This document shows, one piece after another, positions 2,978 to 5,063 of a stretch of 64,000 nt of DNA. Position 1 is the stretch's first letter, and the number at the start of each line of letters is the position of its first letter. Source of the stretch: Obrimoposthia wandeli (Eukaryota). A program made the translations under genes and the position numbers. The DNA lies in contig CDROCS010000506.1 of NCBI GenBank assembly GCA_977020255.1, positions 3,658,001-3,722,000 on the forward strand, written 5' to 3'. Below the pieces are notes generated by a model. The model was not told where the DNA came from, ran no database searches, and saw only the letters and a program-made list of their open reading frames with translations.

Positions 2978-3006
2978 TTGCGATAATTTTAACAGACTGG
3001 TACTTT
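2978..3006 (+). promoter_or_regulatory. sigma70 promoter with extended -10 for the trp leader/trpS
   Basis: TTGCGA (2978-2983), 17 bp spacer, TGG-TACTTT (3001-3006); predicted +1 falls at about 3013. Confidence 0.55.
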
Positions 3007-3012
3007 GAATTA

Positions 3013-3072
3013 ATGAAATTAAACCTTATTTTTACGCTTATCACAACATCTTGGTGGCACTCTCTTCTATAA
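3013..3072 (+). CDS. Trp leader peptide MKLNLIFTLITTSWWHSLL (not in the ORF track)
   Basis: ATG 3013, tandem TGG TGG at 3052-3057, TAA 3070-3072; directly upstream of a tryptophanyl-tRNA synthetase gene. Confidence 0.8.
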   Translation: MKLNLIFTLITTSWWHSLL

Positions 3073-3166
3073 GAGCGGTGTTGAATACTTTTGTTCACAG
3101 ATCGCCGGATGGCAGCTGATGAATAAAACGTAAGTATGTCTCCGGTAGTTTATTTTGGAGATATAC
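3058..3166 (+). promoter_or_regulatory. Attenuator with alternative hairpins; the last hairpin sequesters the trpS Shine-Dalgarno
   Basis: GTATGTCTCC (3134-3143) pairs with GGAGATATAC (3157-3166); the competing CCGGATGGCA (3105-3114) pairs with TGTCTCCGG (3137-3145). Confidence 0.65.
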
Positions 3167-3167
3167 A

Positions 3168-4238
3168 ATGAAAAAAAATCAATCAATAGCTTTAAACCAA
3201 GCATCTAATTTAGCCACAAATACCGATATTAAAGAAAAAATCCTCACTGGCGATCGCGCTACGGGCTCTCTACACCTTGGCCATTATGTTGGTTCATTAC
3301 AACAGCGCGTTAAGCTACAGCATCAATATCAGCAAACGATCTTAGTCGCAGACATGCAGGGGCTTACTGATAATGGCCATAATCCGCAAAAAGTATCATC
3401 AAACATTCTTAATGTTGTTGCTGATTATCTTGCCGCAGGCATCGATCCATTAAAAACCACGATCTGTTTACAATCAGGGATCCCTGCACTAGCTGAGCTA
3501 ACGATGTATTATTCAAACTTAGTGTCTATTTCCCGTTTAGAACGTAATCCAACGGTTAAAAATGAGATCAAAAGTAAATCATTTGGCCGATCTATTCCTG
3601 CTGGTTTTTTAACATATCCAATTAGTCAGGCGGCAGACATTACTGCATTTAAAGCTACGTTAATACCTGTGGGTGAAGATCAGTTACCTATGTTGGAACA
3701 GACCAATGAGATCGTCAGAAGATTAAACCATATTGCCCAGCAAGACATTTTAGTTGAATGTAAGCCATTATTAAGTAAGGTTTCACGTTTACCGAGTGTC
3801 GACGGTAAAAGCAAAATGTCTAAATCGATGGGCAATACCATCATGCTAAGTTCAAGTGAAAAAGATATCCGTAAAGCGGTGAAAGCCATGTATACAGATC
3901 CGGATCATTTACGTGTGTGTGACCCAGGGAAAGTCGAAGGCAATGTGGTATTTACGTATTTAGATGCATTCCATCAAGATCAAGGCTATGTAGCGAATTT
4001 AAAAGCGCAATATTCTGCTGGTGGTTTAGGTGATGGCAGCGTTAAGAAGATCTTAGAAGAATGTTTACAAGATCTACTAAAGCCAATTCGTCAGCGCCGA
4101 GAAGAATTCATCGCAGATCGAACACAGCTAATTGCGATCTTGAAAGCAGGAACTGAACGCTCTCAAGATGAGTCTAATGAGGTATTACGTCAGGTGAAAA
4201 GTGCCTTTGGGTTAAATCTGTTTTATAAGGATAATTAA
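3168..4238 (+). CDS. trpS: Tryptophan--tRNA ligase (TrpRS II / trpS2 type)
   Basis: TGDRATGSLHLGH (HIGH-type), YPISQAADI, PVGEDQ, KMSKS. Confidence 0.95.
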   Translation: MKKNQSIALNQASNLATNTDIKEKILTGDRATGSLHLGHYVGSLQQRVKLQHQYQQTILVADMQGLTDNGHNPQKVSSNILNVVADYLAAGIDPLKTTICLQSGIPALAELTMYYSNLVSISRLERNPTVKNEIKSKSFGRSIPAGFLTYPISQAADITAFKATLIPVGEDQLPMLEQTNEIVRRLNHIAQQDILVECKPLLSKVSRLPSVDGKSKMSKSMGNTIMLSSSEKDIRKAVKAMYTDPDHLRVCDPGKVEGNVVFTYLDAFHQDQGYVANLKAQYSAGGLGDGSVKKILEECLQDLLKPIRQRREEFIADRTQLIAILKAGTERSQDESNEVLRQVKSAFGLNLFYKDN

Positions 4239-4240
4239 AC

Positions 4241-4552
4241 ATGCATAATATTTTTGATTCAATCCCCGCAGATCTAAGTAACGAGATATTTGAAGATCTC
4301 GTTAGCAGTGACAAAGTTAAAATAGAACGCATTATTTCAAAAGGGCACACCTCTCCAGATTTTGGCTGGTATGACCAAGAGCAGAATGAGTGGGTGATTG
4401 TTATTGCTGGTAGCGCTGTTATCGGTTTTGATGACAAGCCCTCTGCGACGCTTAAAGCGGGTGATTACCTGAATATTCCTGCACACCAAAAACACAAAGT
4501 GGCGTGGACAGATCCAAATGTTGAAACTATCTGGTTAGCAGTGCATTATTGA
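4241..4552 (+). CDS. Cupin domain protein
   Basis: Cupin motifs WYDQEQNEWVIVIAG and GDYLNIPAHQKHKV. Confidence 0.8.
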   Translation: MHNIFDSIPADLSNEIFEDLVSSDKVKIERIISKGHTSPDFGWYDQEQNEWVIVIAGSAVIGFDDKPSATLKAGDYLNIPAHQKHKVAWTDPNVETIWLAVHY

Positions 4553-4604
4553 AGGCTACGTTATAATTAACCAGCTGTATAGAACACTAGTAAAGGGAAC
4601 TGAA

Positions 4605-5063
4605 ATGGAAATTCGAATTGATGATTTAACAGGCCCTGAAGTGGCGCAGTTATTACAAGAACACCATCAAGACATGCTTGATCATACGCCTGCTGAAAGT
4701 GTGCATTCGTTAGATATTAGCGGACTACAATCGCCAGAGGTGACGTTTTGGAGTGCATGGATTGATGGCGATCTTGCAGGTTGTGGTGCGATAAAAGTGA
4801 TTGAGGCTGGACATGCTGAGCTAAAATCAATGCGCACATCGAGTACGCATTTACGACAAGGGGTGGCTCAGCGGTTACTGACGTATATTTTAGCTGCGGT
4901 CAAAGCCCAAGGTATAACAACCATCAGCTTAGAAACTGGTACGCCAGATTCATTCATACCAGCTCAAAAGCTATATCGAGATTTTGGTTTTAAGGAGTGC
5001 GAACCGTTTGCTAACTACAGCGAAGATCCGTACAGCTTATATATGACGAAAAAAATCGATTGA
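4605..5063 (+). CDS. GNAT N-acetyltransferase (YedL-like)
   Basis: ELKSMRT, RQGVA acetyl-CoA motif, LETG, LYRDFGF. Confidence 0.85.
   Translation: MEIRIDDLTGPEVAQLLQEHHQDMLDHTPAESVHSLDISGLQSPEVTFWSAWIDGDLAGCGAIKVIEAGHAELKSMRTSSTHLRQGVAQRLLTYILAAVKAQGITTISLETGTPDSFIPAQKLYRDFGFKECEPFANYSEDPYSLYMTKKID

Follow-up and report, generated by a model that had tools for sequence, protein, structure and literature searches.

The 64,000-nucleotide stretch of DNA analysed here (positions 3,658,001 to 3,722,000 of contig CDROCS010000506.1, assembly GCA_977020255.1, filed under Obrimoposthia wandeli; hereafter the window) carries a TrpRS II-type tryptophanyl-tRNA synthetase gene, trpS2, preceded by a short open reading frame (ORF) with two adjacent tryptophan codons and by a chain of alternative RNA pairings, the last of which buries the Shine-Dalgarno (SD) sequence of trpS2. 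This arrangement is probably a ribosome-mediated tryptophan attenuator that controls the auxiliary synthetase gene and that, in Moritella, acts on the SD sequence. The window DNA is from a Moritella, and the best protein matches of TrpS2 are found in Moritella sp. Urea-trap-13 (97%) and M. dasanensis (96%). An earlier note on this DNA had proposed such a device, in which a ribosome stalled on a leaderless leader ORF would set off a relay of hairpins that opens the SD sequence.

Conservation of a leader ORF with two tryptophan codons

The promoter, leader and structural gene are arranged as follows:

2978-2983, + strand: -35 element TTGCGA; TTGnnn 16-18 nt before the -10 hexamer recurs in orthologues
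2998-3006, + strand: extended -10 element, TGG TACTTT (hexamer 3001-3006); the hexamer ends 6 nt before the leader AUG, for a predicted +1 at 3013
3013-3072, + strand: leader ORF of 19 codons, MKLNLIFTLITTSWWHSLL, with TGG TGG at 3052-3057; from the sequence and orthologue conservation
3168-4238, + strand: trpS2, TrpRS II-type tryptophanyl-tRNA synthetase, 356 aa; from family assignment and structure comparison

Orthologues were counted at a protein identity of at least 58% and with upstream DNA on the contig, a total of 53 loci (30 proteobacterial loci from the genome collection and 23 from metagenomes). The leader ORF with its tandem tryptophan codons (WW) is present in the window as the earlier note had claimed. 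That note had staked its reading on conservation of the WW pair, which precedes trpS2 in 29/30 genome-collection loci and in 23/23 metagenome loci, that is, in 52/53 orthologues. The loci bearing it include those of Moritella, Paraglaciecola, Photobacterium, Pseudoalteromonas, enterobacterial plasmids and a betaproteobacterial genome bin. The sole exception, in Pseudoalteromonas sp. NBT06-2 (L028), has lost the entire leader and retained trpS2.

The geometry of the leader is nearly constant: it is 16-19 codons long in 48/52 loci, its first tryptophan is codon 13-14 in 46/52, and the distance from WW to the stop is 3-4 codons in 47/52. The peptide outside WW is variable (..SWWHSLL, ..SWWRSF, ..FWWRSS, ..RWWLPS, ..WWRP, ..WWRFI). 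A constant ORF length and WW position combined with a variable peptide argue for translation of the ORF with the tryptophan codons as the sensor, and against an arrest peptide that depends on its own sequence.

A few loci depart from this pattern. At L028:2700-3040, a natural deletion variant, homology to the neighbouring locus L027 begins only past the strand complementary to the SD sequence (the anti-SD strand), so that the SD sequence is probably constitutively open there. At L018:2820-2891 (a Photobacterium genome bin) CGA stands in place of the leader stop TAG, so that the leader grows from 18 to 23 codons and runs through the first hairpin described below (hairpin A). The leaders at L052:1322-1524 (..FWWRTTCGAGFVIQF) and L053:1294-1479 (the near-identical ..CWWRTTCGAVFVIQF) have hairpin A inside the ORF and their stop right before a terminator-like hairpin. 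Beyond the orthologues, no WW leader was found before distant TrpRS II-type genes (L031, L032 and L058-L113; 26-58% identity, mostly gut or Firmicute-like), nor was a T-box found at the Rfam gathering score in the 18 of these distant loci that were scanned. A second mini-ORF at 3119 was rejected: other lineages have AAG or TTG in place of its ATG, and the conserved UGAA found there would accordingly be structural.

A promoter abutting the leader start codon

The promoter elements listed in the earlier note are all in the sequence. TTGCGA is separated from TACTTT by a 17-nt spacer (2984-3000), whose final three bases are the TGG of the extended -10, TACTTT is followed by 6 nt and then the ATG, and the leader in the window has no SD-like purine run ahead of it. 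When the loci are aligned on the leader AUG, TTGnnn, a spacer of 16-18 nt and TAnnnT come into register, and the placement of the promoter next to the AUG is thus conserved. TAnnnT ends 6-10 nt before the AUG in 43/52 loci (6-7 nt in 35), an extended -10 TGn is found in 37/52, TGGCAGGAT occupies the -10 position in four more, and an SD-like motif before the leader AUG is absent in 45/52. A consensus promoter scan of the window made no call, the site being below its 9-of-12 threshold, and the promoter call therefore rests on conservation. From established promoter geometry, +1 would fall on the A of the AUG or no more than a few bases away. As the extended -10 ends 6-7 nt before the AUG and no SD sequence fits in between, the leader mRNA is probably leaderless.

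About 40/52 leaders (counted from peptide lists) start with AUG AA(A/U/C), Met-Lys or Met-Asn, as does the window at 3013-3018; such a start may favour leaderless initiation or may reflect the initial transcribed sequence. One assembled RNA contig, from a run of unknown type, starts exactly at 3013. It was not counted as evidence for the transcription start site, adjacent variant positions being enough to explain the break. A TrpR operator was also rejected, as the promoter contains a single GTACT half-site (found by eye) that is not conserved in orthologues.

Five alternative pairings between the leader and the SD sequence

Downstream of the tryptophan codons, five pairings link successive segments of the transcript, numbered 1 to 6:

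3057-3081, + strand: hairpin A (segments 1:2), arms 3057-3066 and 3071-3081; minimum-free-energy (MFE) fold
3075-3105, + strand: helix B (segments 2:3), 3075-3079 with 3101-3105, the anti-C structure; best fold of 3071-3106, covariation
3086-3132, + strand: hairpin C (segments 3:4), apex GCC-GGAU-GGC at 3104-3113; MFE fold, covariation
3101-3149, + strand: helix D (segments 4:5), core 3105-3114 with 3137-3145, extension 3101-3104 with 3146-3149; covariation, RNAalifold
3134-3166, + strand: hairpin E (segments 5:6), 3134-3145 with 3155-3166, 12 bp burying GGAG at 3157-3160; MFE fold, conserved

All five had been drawn in the earlier note and all five recur in orthologues. The 1:2, 2:3 and 3:4 pairings of an ordinary attenuator are mutually exclusive here, B and C sharing 3101-3106. 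The MFE fold of 3013-3185 consists of A, C and E (-41.3 kcal/mol, z -2.5), and folding the sequences one by one recovers these three hairpins at all loci.

Hairpin A, whose 5' arm begins in the second tryptophan codon and whose loop holds the leader stop, is found in 50/52 loci at about -8 to -17 kcal/mol in per-sequence folds. Its arms change together between lineages, as judged by eye (CAC/GUG, CGC/GCG, CUGCCUU/AAGGCGG, CGCCCC/GGGGCG). Helix B closes a small apical hairpin (3082-3088 with 3093-3097 and 3099, lying within 3082-3099). Hairpin C folds at -10 to -26 kcal/mol in 50/52 loci, the remaining two, L052 and L053, not being captured by the segmentation used. Helix D captures the anti-SD strand, always at the same site, at -17 to -24 kcal/mol in most loci and with a median z of about -4 against shuffles. 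Hairpin E, the duplex of the anti-SD strand with the SD sequence, is found in 52/52 loci at -6 to -18 kcal/mol. Of the 30 SD-bearing genes of the window that could be scored, none has its SD sequence sequestered by a stronger duplex (-16.6 vs a median of -5.9 kcal/mol); with the recurrence of the arrangement in about 50 orthologous loci, this puts the features above chance. In the window neither C (which ends at 3132) nor E has a U tract behind it, and the terminator scan was empty, in agreement with the earlier note as far as E is concerned.

Covariation was counted on a 50-sequence MAFFT alignment fitted to no structure, with slid helices and 500 shuffles as controls:

Helix D: 85% of cells paired (slid 18-62%); 7/9 pairs compensatory; both-side changes 46 vs 16.7 ± 2.8 (0/500)
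Helix B: 88% of cells paired (slid 20-62%); 2/6 pairs compensatory; both-side changes 12 vs 4.6 ± 1.5 (0/500)
Hairpin C, inner stem: 83% of cells paired (slid 19-88%, the maximum coming from the -3 slide, with 144 countable cells only); 5/6 pairs compensatory; both-side changes 17 vs 8.6 ± 2.2 (0/500)

Column-based pair counts for A and E were dropped and per-sequence folds used for these two hairpins, because their registers shift between clades in the MAFFT alignment. The covariation that the earlier note had proposed as a check in stems B to E is thus seen above controls for B, C and D, E being judged by per-sequence folds only. Within helix B, pair 36:88 is C-G in 36 sequences and U-A in 8, and inspection of the alignment places the U-A pair in three separate clades. 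RNAalifold, run unguided, returned the D core and a pairing of the tryptophan codons with segment 2. The alignment columns for 3101-3106 therefore have three alternative, individually supported partners, which is the signature of a switch. In the Photobacterium phosphoreum/iliopiscarium clade (L017-L022) an extra hairpin (AUACGCC..GUAU) lies between C and the anti-SD strand, and the spacer is lengthened to 109-128 nt.

Direction of the switch

Relatives of higher GC content indicate which of the alternative folds would correspond to expression. In these lineages (the enterobacterial-type loci L041-L051, L054, L057 and L055, and the betaproteobacterial bin L029) hairpin C has a G+C-rich stem, AGCCGCC-GAAA-GGCGGCU, with a U-rich tail behind it, and is a predicted standard intrinsic terminator. 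The U-tailed loci keep D and E: the anti-SD strand (CCUUUCGG) can pair either with AAGGAG or with the loop and 3' strand of the terminator (CCGAAAGG...), and in L046-L054 the anti-SD strand is captured only with segment 2 free. As C is a U-tailed terminator in these relatives, the logic is fixed, in the manner of E. coli trpL, as stalling on segment 1, release of segment 2, then B, then no C; their relay would act on both transcription and translation. The order of events put forward in the earlier note (stalling at WW, formation of B, then of D, opening of the SD sequence) is supported by this comparison, the logic having been fixed independently of the Moritella sequence. By homology, A+C+E would be the OFF state and B+D the ON state in Moritella, where, there being no U tract, only SD sequestration remains as an output, that is, a translational one.

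The following sequence of events would account for these features. Transcription would start at or within a few bases of the leader AUG, as the promoter geometry predicts, and a ribosome would load on the 5' end without an SD sequence. Footprint geometry, read from the sequence, places the ribosome over 3057-3066 when a tryptophan codon is in the A site and over 3071-3081 when it is at the stop. With charged tRNA-Trp plentiful, the ribosome would pass both tryptophan codons, reach the stop and cover segment 2, so that hairpin C would form during its own transcription and hairpin A once the ribosome was released. The anti-SD strand (segment 5) would then pair with the SD sequence in E, and trpS2 would stay untranslated. 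With charged tRNA-Trp scarce, the ribosome would stall at the tryptophan codons and cover segment 1; segment 2 would pair with segment 3 in B, breaking or preventing C, and the freed apex and 3' strand of C would capture the anti-SD strand in D. The SD sequence would thus emerge unpaired and trpS2 would be translated.

Folding energies and the case for co-transcriptional choice

The growing transcript changes its best fold as it lengthens. For 3071-3106 it is B with its apical hairpin (-9.9 kcal/mol), for 3071-3132 it is C (-14.7 kcal/mol), and for 3071-3150, with the SD sequence not yet made, it is B+D, the proposed ON state (-21.3 kcal/mol). Masking segment 1, as a stalled ribosome would do, lowers the cost of opening the SD sequence in 38/52 loci and raises it in 7; in the window locus the cost falls from 11.1 to 8.5 kcal/mol, a drop of 2.6. 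Leaving segment 2 free increases the gain from capturing segment 5 in 29/49 loci and reduces it in 10.

Several observations weigh against the attenuator model. Masking segment 1 does not displace C+E (-30.4 kcal/mol) as the equilibrium fold of the full-length Moritella RNA. Several Photobacterium loci have D as their best fold even when no ribosome stalls, and the predicted energies do not describe a switch between two clearly separated states. As 3101-3105 is claimed both by B and by the 5' extension of D, the ON state cannot accommodate the two in full. The covariation counts are inflated by relatedness, against which the slid controls protect only in part. In two loci the leader starts with GUG, a poor start codon for leaderless initiation, and the leaders of L052 and L053, at 28-29 codons, have a different geometry. 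Public RNA assembled contigs yield no transcript 5' end: their breaks at 2996-3035 coincide with strain-variable positions and are probably caused by strain variants, and the metatranscriptome contigs of a close Moritella strain show breaks that flank the promoter and leader start, the depth upstream and downstream of them being the same.

A simple two-state model based on thermodynamics was rejected, because equilibrium folding with the masked footprint leaves the Moritella SD sequence closed, and a co-transcriptional model is preferred for the same reason. When segment 2 is left out, D beats C by only 1.6-3.3 kcal/mol (the range depending on the fragment ends), so that C, being made first, should persist until E closes. 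The folds are consistent with a choice made during transcription, in which the ON fold would be a kinetic trap, and full-length D may keep the SD sequence open after the leader ribosome has left.

Alternative explanations

Termination offers the most serious alternative to control at the SD sequence, and we regard it as unlikely. Here the output in Moritella would be mainly transcriptional, through Rho-dependent or non-canonical termination at or after C, with the SD hairpin as a back-up layer. C is indeed homologous to true terminators in relatives, and untranslated mRNA is exposed to Rho-dependent polarity; an untranslated trpS2 message would be open to it, which is compatible with the translational attenuator as well. 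Speaking against termination are the lack of a U tract after C or E, the empty terminator scan, a spacer that is A/U-rich rather than C-rich, and a hairpin E that is unusually strong and conserved. The switch might also run in the opposite direction, with a resting fold of A and full-length D that leaves the SD sequence open, and with stalling giving 3101-3105 to segment 2, which would close the SD sequence and turn trpS2 off in starvation. Such an arrangement agrees with the unguided RNAalifold consensus (an A-like helix and D), with the P. phosphoreum clade, among others, having D as its best fold in the unstalled state, with the overlap of B and the D extension at 3101-3105, and with the 7/52 loci in which masking segment 1 raises the cost of opening. 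We nevertheless consider it improbable, more so than termination. Where C is U-tailed, B can only be an antiterminator, and a read-through transcript that was then translationally closed would be senseless; segment 5 is captured only with segment 2 free in the U-tailed L046-L054, masking lowers the opening cost in 38/52 loci, and B and D coexist in the best Moritella fold of 3071-3150.

Two further explanations dispense with the tryptophan codons as a charging sensor, and both have very little chance of being right. A TnaC-like arrest peptide would sense free tryptophan (or a tryptophan analogue) in the exit tunnel and stall at the stop codon. It would fit the tryptophan residues at a fixed 3-4 codons from the stop and the Pro-containing tails of some lineages (WWLPS, WWRP), but WW alone is conserved across lineages, with differing neighbours (SWWRS, RWWLPS, WWHSLL, WWRFI), and the fixed distance to the stop is accounted for by hairpin A with its covarying arms. 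The Trp/Asp/Pro spacing of TnaC has no counterpart in the trpS2 leader peptides. Equally hard to credit is that the short ORF goes untranslated, the region acting instead as an RNA that binds a protein or ligand, or the SD hairpin responding to cold or heat, with WW as a by-product of the pairing of UGGUGGC. This sequence does pair with segment 2, so that its conservation is possibly structural, E is temperature-sensitive in silico, and Moritella is cold-adapted. Against this, about 50 loci have retained a frame of constant length with its start codon at the promoter although their nucleotide and peptide sequences are wholly different, neither Rfam nor the T-box model gave a match, and the element also occurs in mesophiles and on enterobacterial plasmids.

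A broader interpretation of the attenuator can be offered only tentatively, as we think it possible but less likely than not to hold in full. The promoter, leaderless WW leader, five-helix relay and TrpRS II gene would together form one mobile cassette for an inducible back-up synthetase, the RNA serving as a two-state kinetic memory switch. The cassette would be turned on whenever charging of tRNA-Trp fails, including in the presence of natural TrpRS inhibitors such as indolmycin. A transient B would make the decision during transcription, and full-length D would hold the SD sequence open after the ribosome had left. Leaderless initiation would then set the timing by coupling the first ribosome to RNA polymerase, and this would account for the constant 13-14 codons ahead of WW. 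That the enzyme is a back-up TrpRS induced when tRNA-Trp charging falls is suggested by analogy with the inducible indolmycin-resistant TrpRS known in Streptomyces (cited in PMC5069768); the mobility of the cassette is consistent with this idea.

Relationship to known attenuators

The trpS2 leader shares with E. coli trpL and pheST-type attenuators a short ORF with tandem regulatory codons and the mutually exclusive 1:2, 2:3 and 3:4 hairpins. With the trpL type it also shares a stop placed so that the terminating ribosome masks segment 2 and, in the higher-GC relatives, a U-tailed 3:4 hairpin. It differs from that type in that no SD sequence precedes the leader and the promoter abuts the AUG, in the two extra segments (5 and 6) that carry the relay to the SD sequence of the structural gene, and, in Moritella, in a 3:4 hairpin without a U tract. 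The controlled gene here is a horizontally mobile, probably second synthetase gene, not a biosynthetic operon. Attenuation by leader peptides is long established; to our knowledge, its proteobacterial examples use an SD-led leader and a terminator.

The closest parallels to the leader itself lie outside the Proteobacteria. Streptomyces and Deinococcus use leaderless mRNAs routinely, whereas Gammaproteobacteria do so rarely. Classical attenuators are described for Streptomyces trpS (PMC1262725). In S. lividans, leaderless leader peptides precede trpS and other synthetase genes, and the trpL2-trpS hairpins, like those of Moritella, have no U stretch; TrpL2 differs from the present leader in its single tryptophan and 13 codons, and no SD-sequestering relay is described for it (PMC8079986). 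In D. deserti, 14 leaderless leader peptides are predicted before aminoacyl-tRNA synthetase genes (PMC4007540). The likeness to the leaders of both groups consists in a leaderless short ORF with cognate codon(s) before a synthetase gene (trpS in the case of Streptomyces), and the enzyme encoded here is itself of the Deinococcus TrpRS II type. Mycobacteria have leaderless polycysteine short ORFs that act as amino-acid-responsive attenuators of downstream genes; these are alike in being leaderless and in having runs of one codon, and differ in phylum, amino acid and target (bioRxiv 10.1101/834739).

As in the translational attenuation of ermC and cat, a stalled leader ribosome would re-pair the segments so that the SD sequence of the next gene leaves its hairpin, no terminator being involved, and the regulated SD sequence is buried in the resting fold (here E). 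The signal would be the charging of tRNA-Trp at hungry codons, vs a drug and a nascent-peptide motif, and five helices are involved here instead of three, with a leader that is probably leaderless.

A permissive search of Rfam 15 returned only noise up to E 10 in the window region, with no match to the Rfam Trp leader. Searches of 20 related loci at the gathering score found no known family and no T-box, L029 and L049 giving nothing. No description of the gammaproteobacterial trpS2 leader was found in the literature searched, which left most subscription journals outside it, and earlier comparative-genomics papers are possible. The earlier note had considered this version of a leader-peptide attenuator new, which holds for its occurrence in Proteobacteria and for an output through the SD sequence only; leaderless leader peptides before trpS had already been described in Streptomyces and before synthetase genes in Deinococcus.

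If the model is correct, an attenuation sensor has been wired to translation through two extra RNA segments, in lineages that differ in having kept or lost the terminator output, and with a leaderless start in a class where such mRNAs are rare. The element is widespread, in marine genera including Aliivibrio fischeri and Shewanella baltica and on plasmids of E. coli, Klebsiella, Shigella and Salmonella where it is flanked by insertion sequences (IS). As no Rfam family covers it, genome annotation misses both the small ORF and the regulation. As a compact natural model, it would lend itself to work on how RNA folds during transcription when coupled to a leaderless ribosome, and the cassette would amount to an inducible resistance module should the enzyme resist TrpRS inhibitors.

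The trpS2 gene and its genomic setting

The trpS2 product is a class I Trp/Tyr synthetase. Its nearest solved structure is D. radiodurans TrpRS II (PDB 1yi8, 2a4m; E 1e-110), E. coli and Vibrio-type enzymes scoring about 1e-32, and it is assigned to the Deinococcus TrpRS II type and not to the housekeeping TrpRS type. Among the window proteins there is no second TrpRS. No origin in Deinococcus or Actinobacteria is indicated, the top-list protein matches being close proteobacterial relatives only.

Relatives at 76-86% identity are found in Paraglaciecola, Photobacterium, Aliivibrio fischeri, Shewanella baltica, Marinomonas, Reinekea, Psychromonas and one Desulfogranum. Copies at 62-64% identity, with the leader present, lie on plasmids of E. 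coli, Shigella, Klebsiella and Salmonella in segments flanked by IS26, IS1 or Tn3; a plasmid-borne trpS2 in E. coli, Klebsiella or Shigella is by definition an additional gene. The leader and trpS2 alone are common to different genera, the flanking genes (2-hydroxyacid dehydrogenase, cupin and GNAT) being kept within Moritella only. Because nothing else is shared between genera, and because of the IS- and Tn-flanked plasmid copies, the leader-trpS2 unit appears to behave as a mobile cassette.

Downstream of trpS2 the window has the following feature:

4241-4552, + strand: cupin gene, starting 2 nt past the trpS2 stop; from gene order

The cupin gene is probably co-transcribed with trpS2. At 4238-5063 of the window the order runs from trpS2 through the cupin gene to a GNAT acetyltransferase gene, a trio kept in Moritella only, which may form one operon under the attenuator.

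On the E. coli plasmids pB379_2 and pKTa005_5 (L114:1712-6973 and L115:1-4238) the cassette lies between IS26 and IS1 or beside a Tn3-like IS3000 transposase. On another E. coli plasmid, a 160-bp piece from upstream of the leader adjoins a fosA gene.

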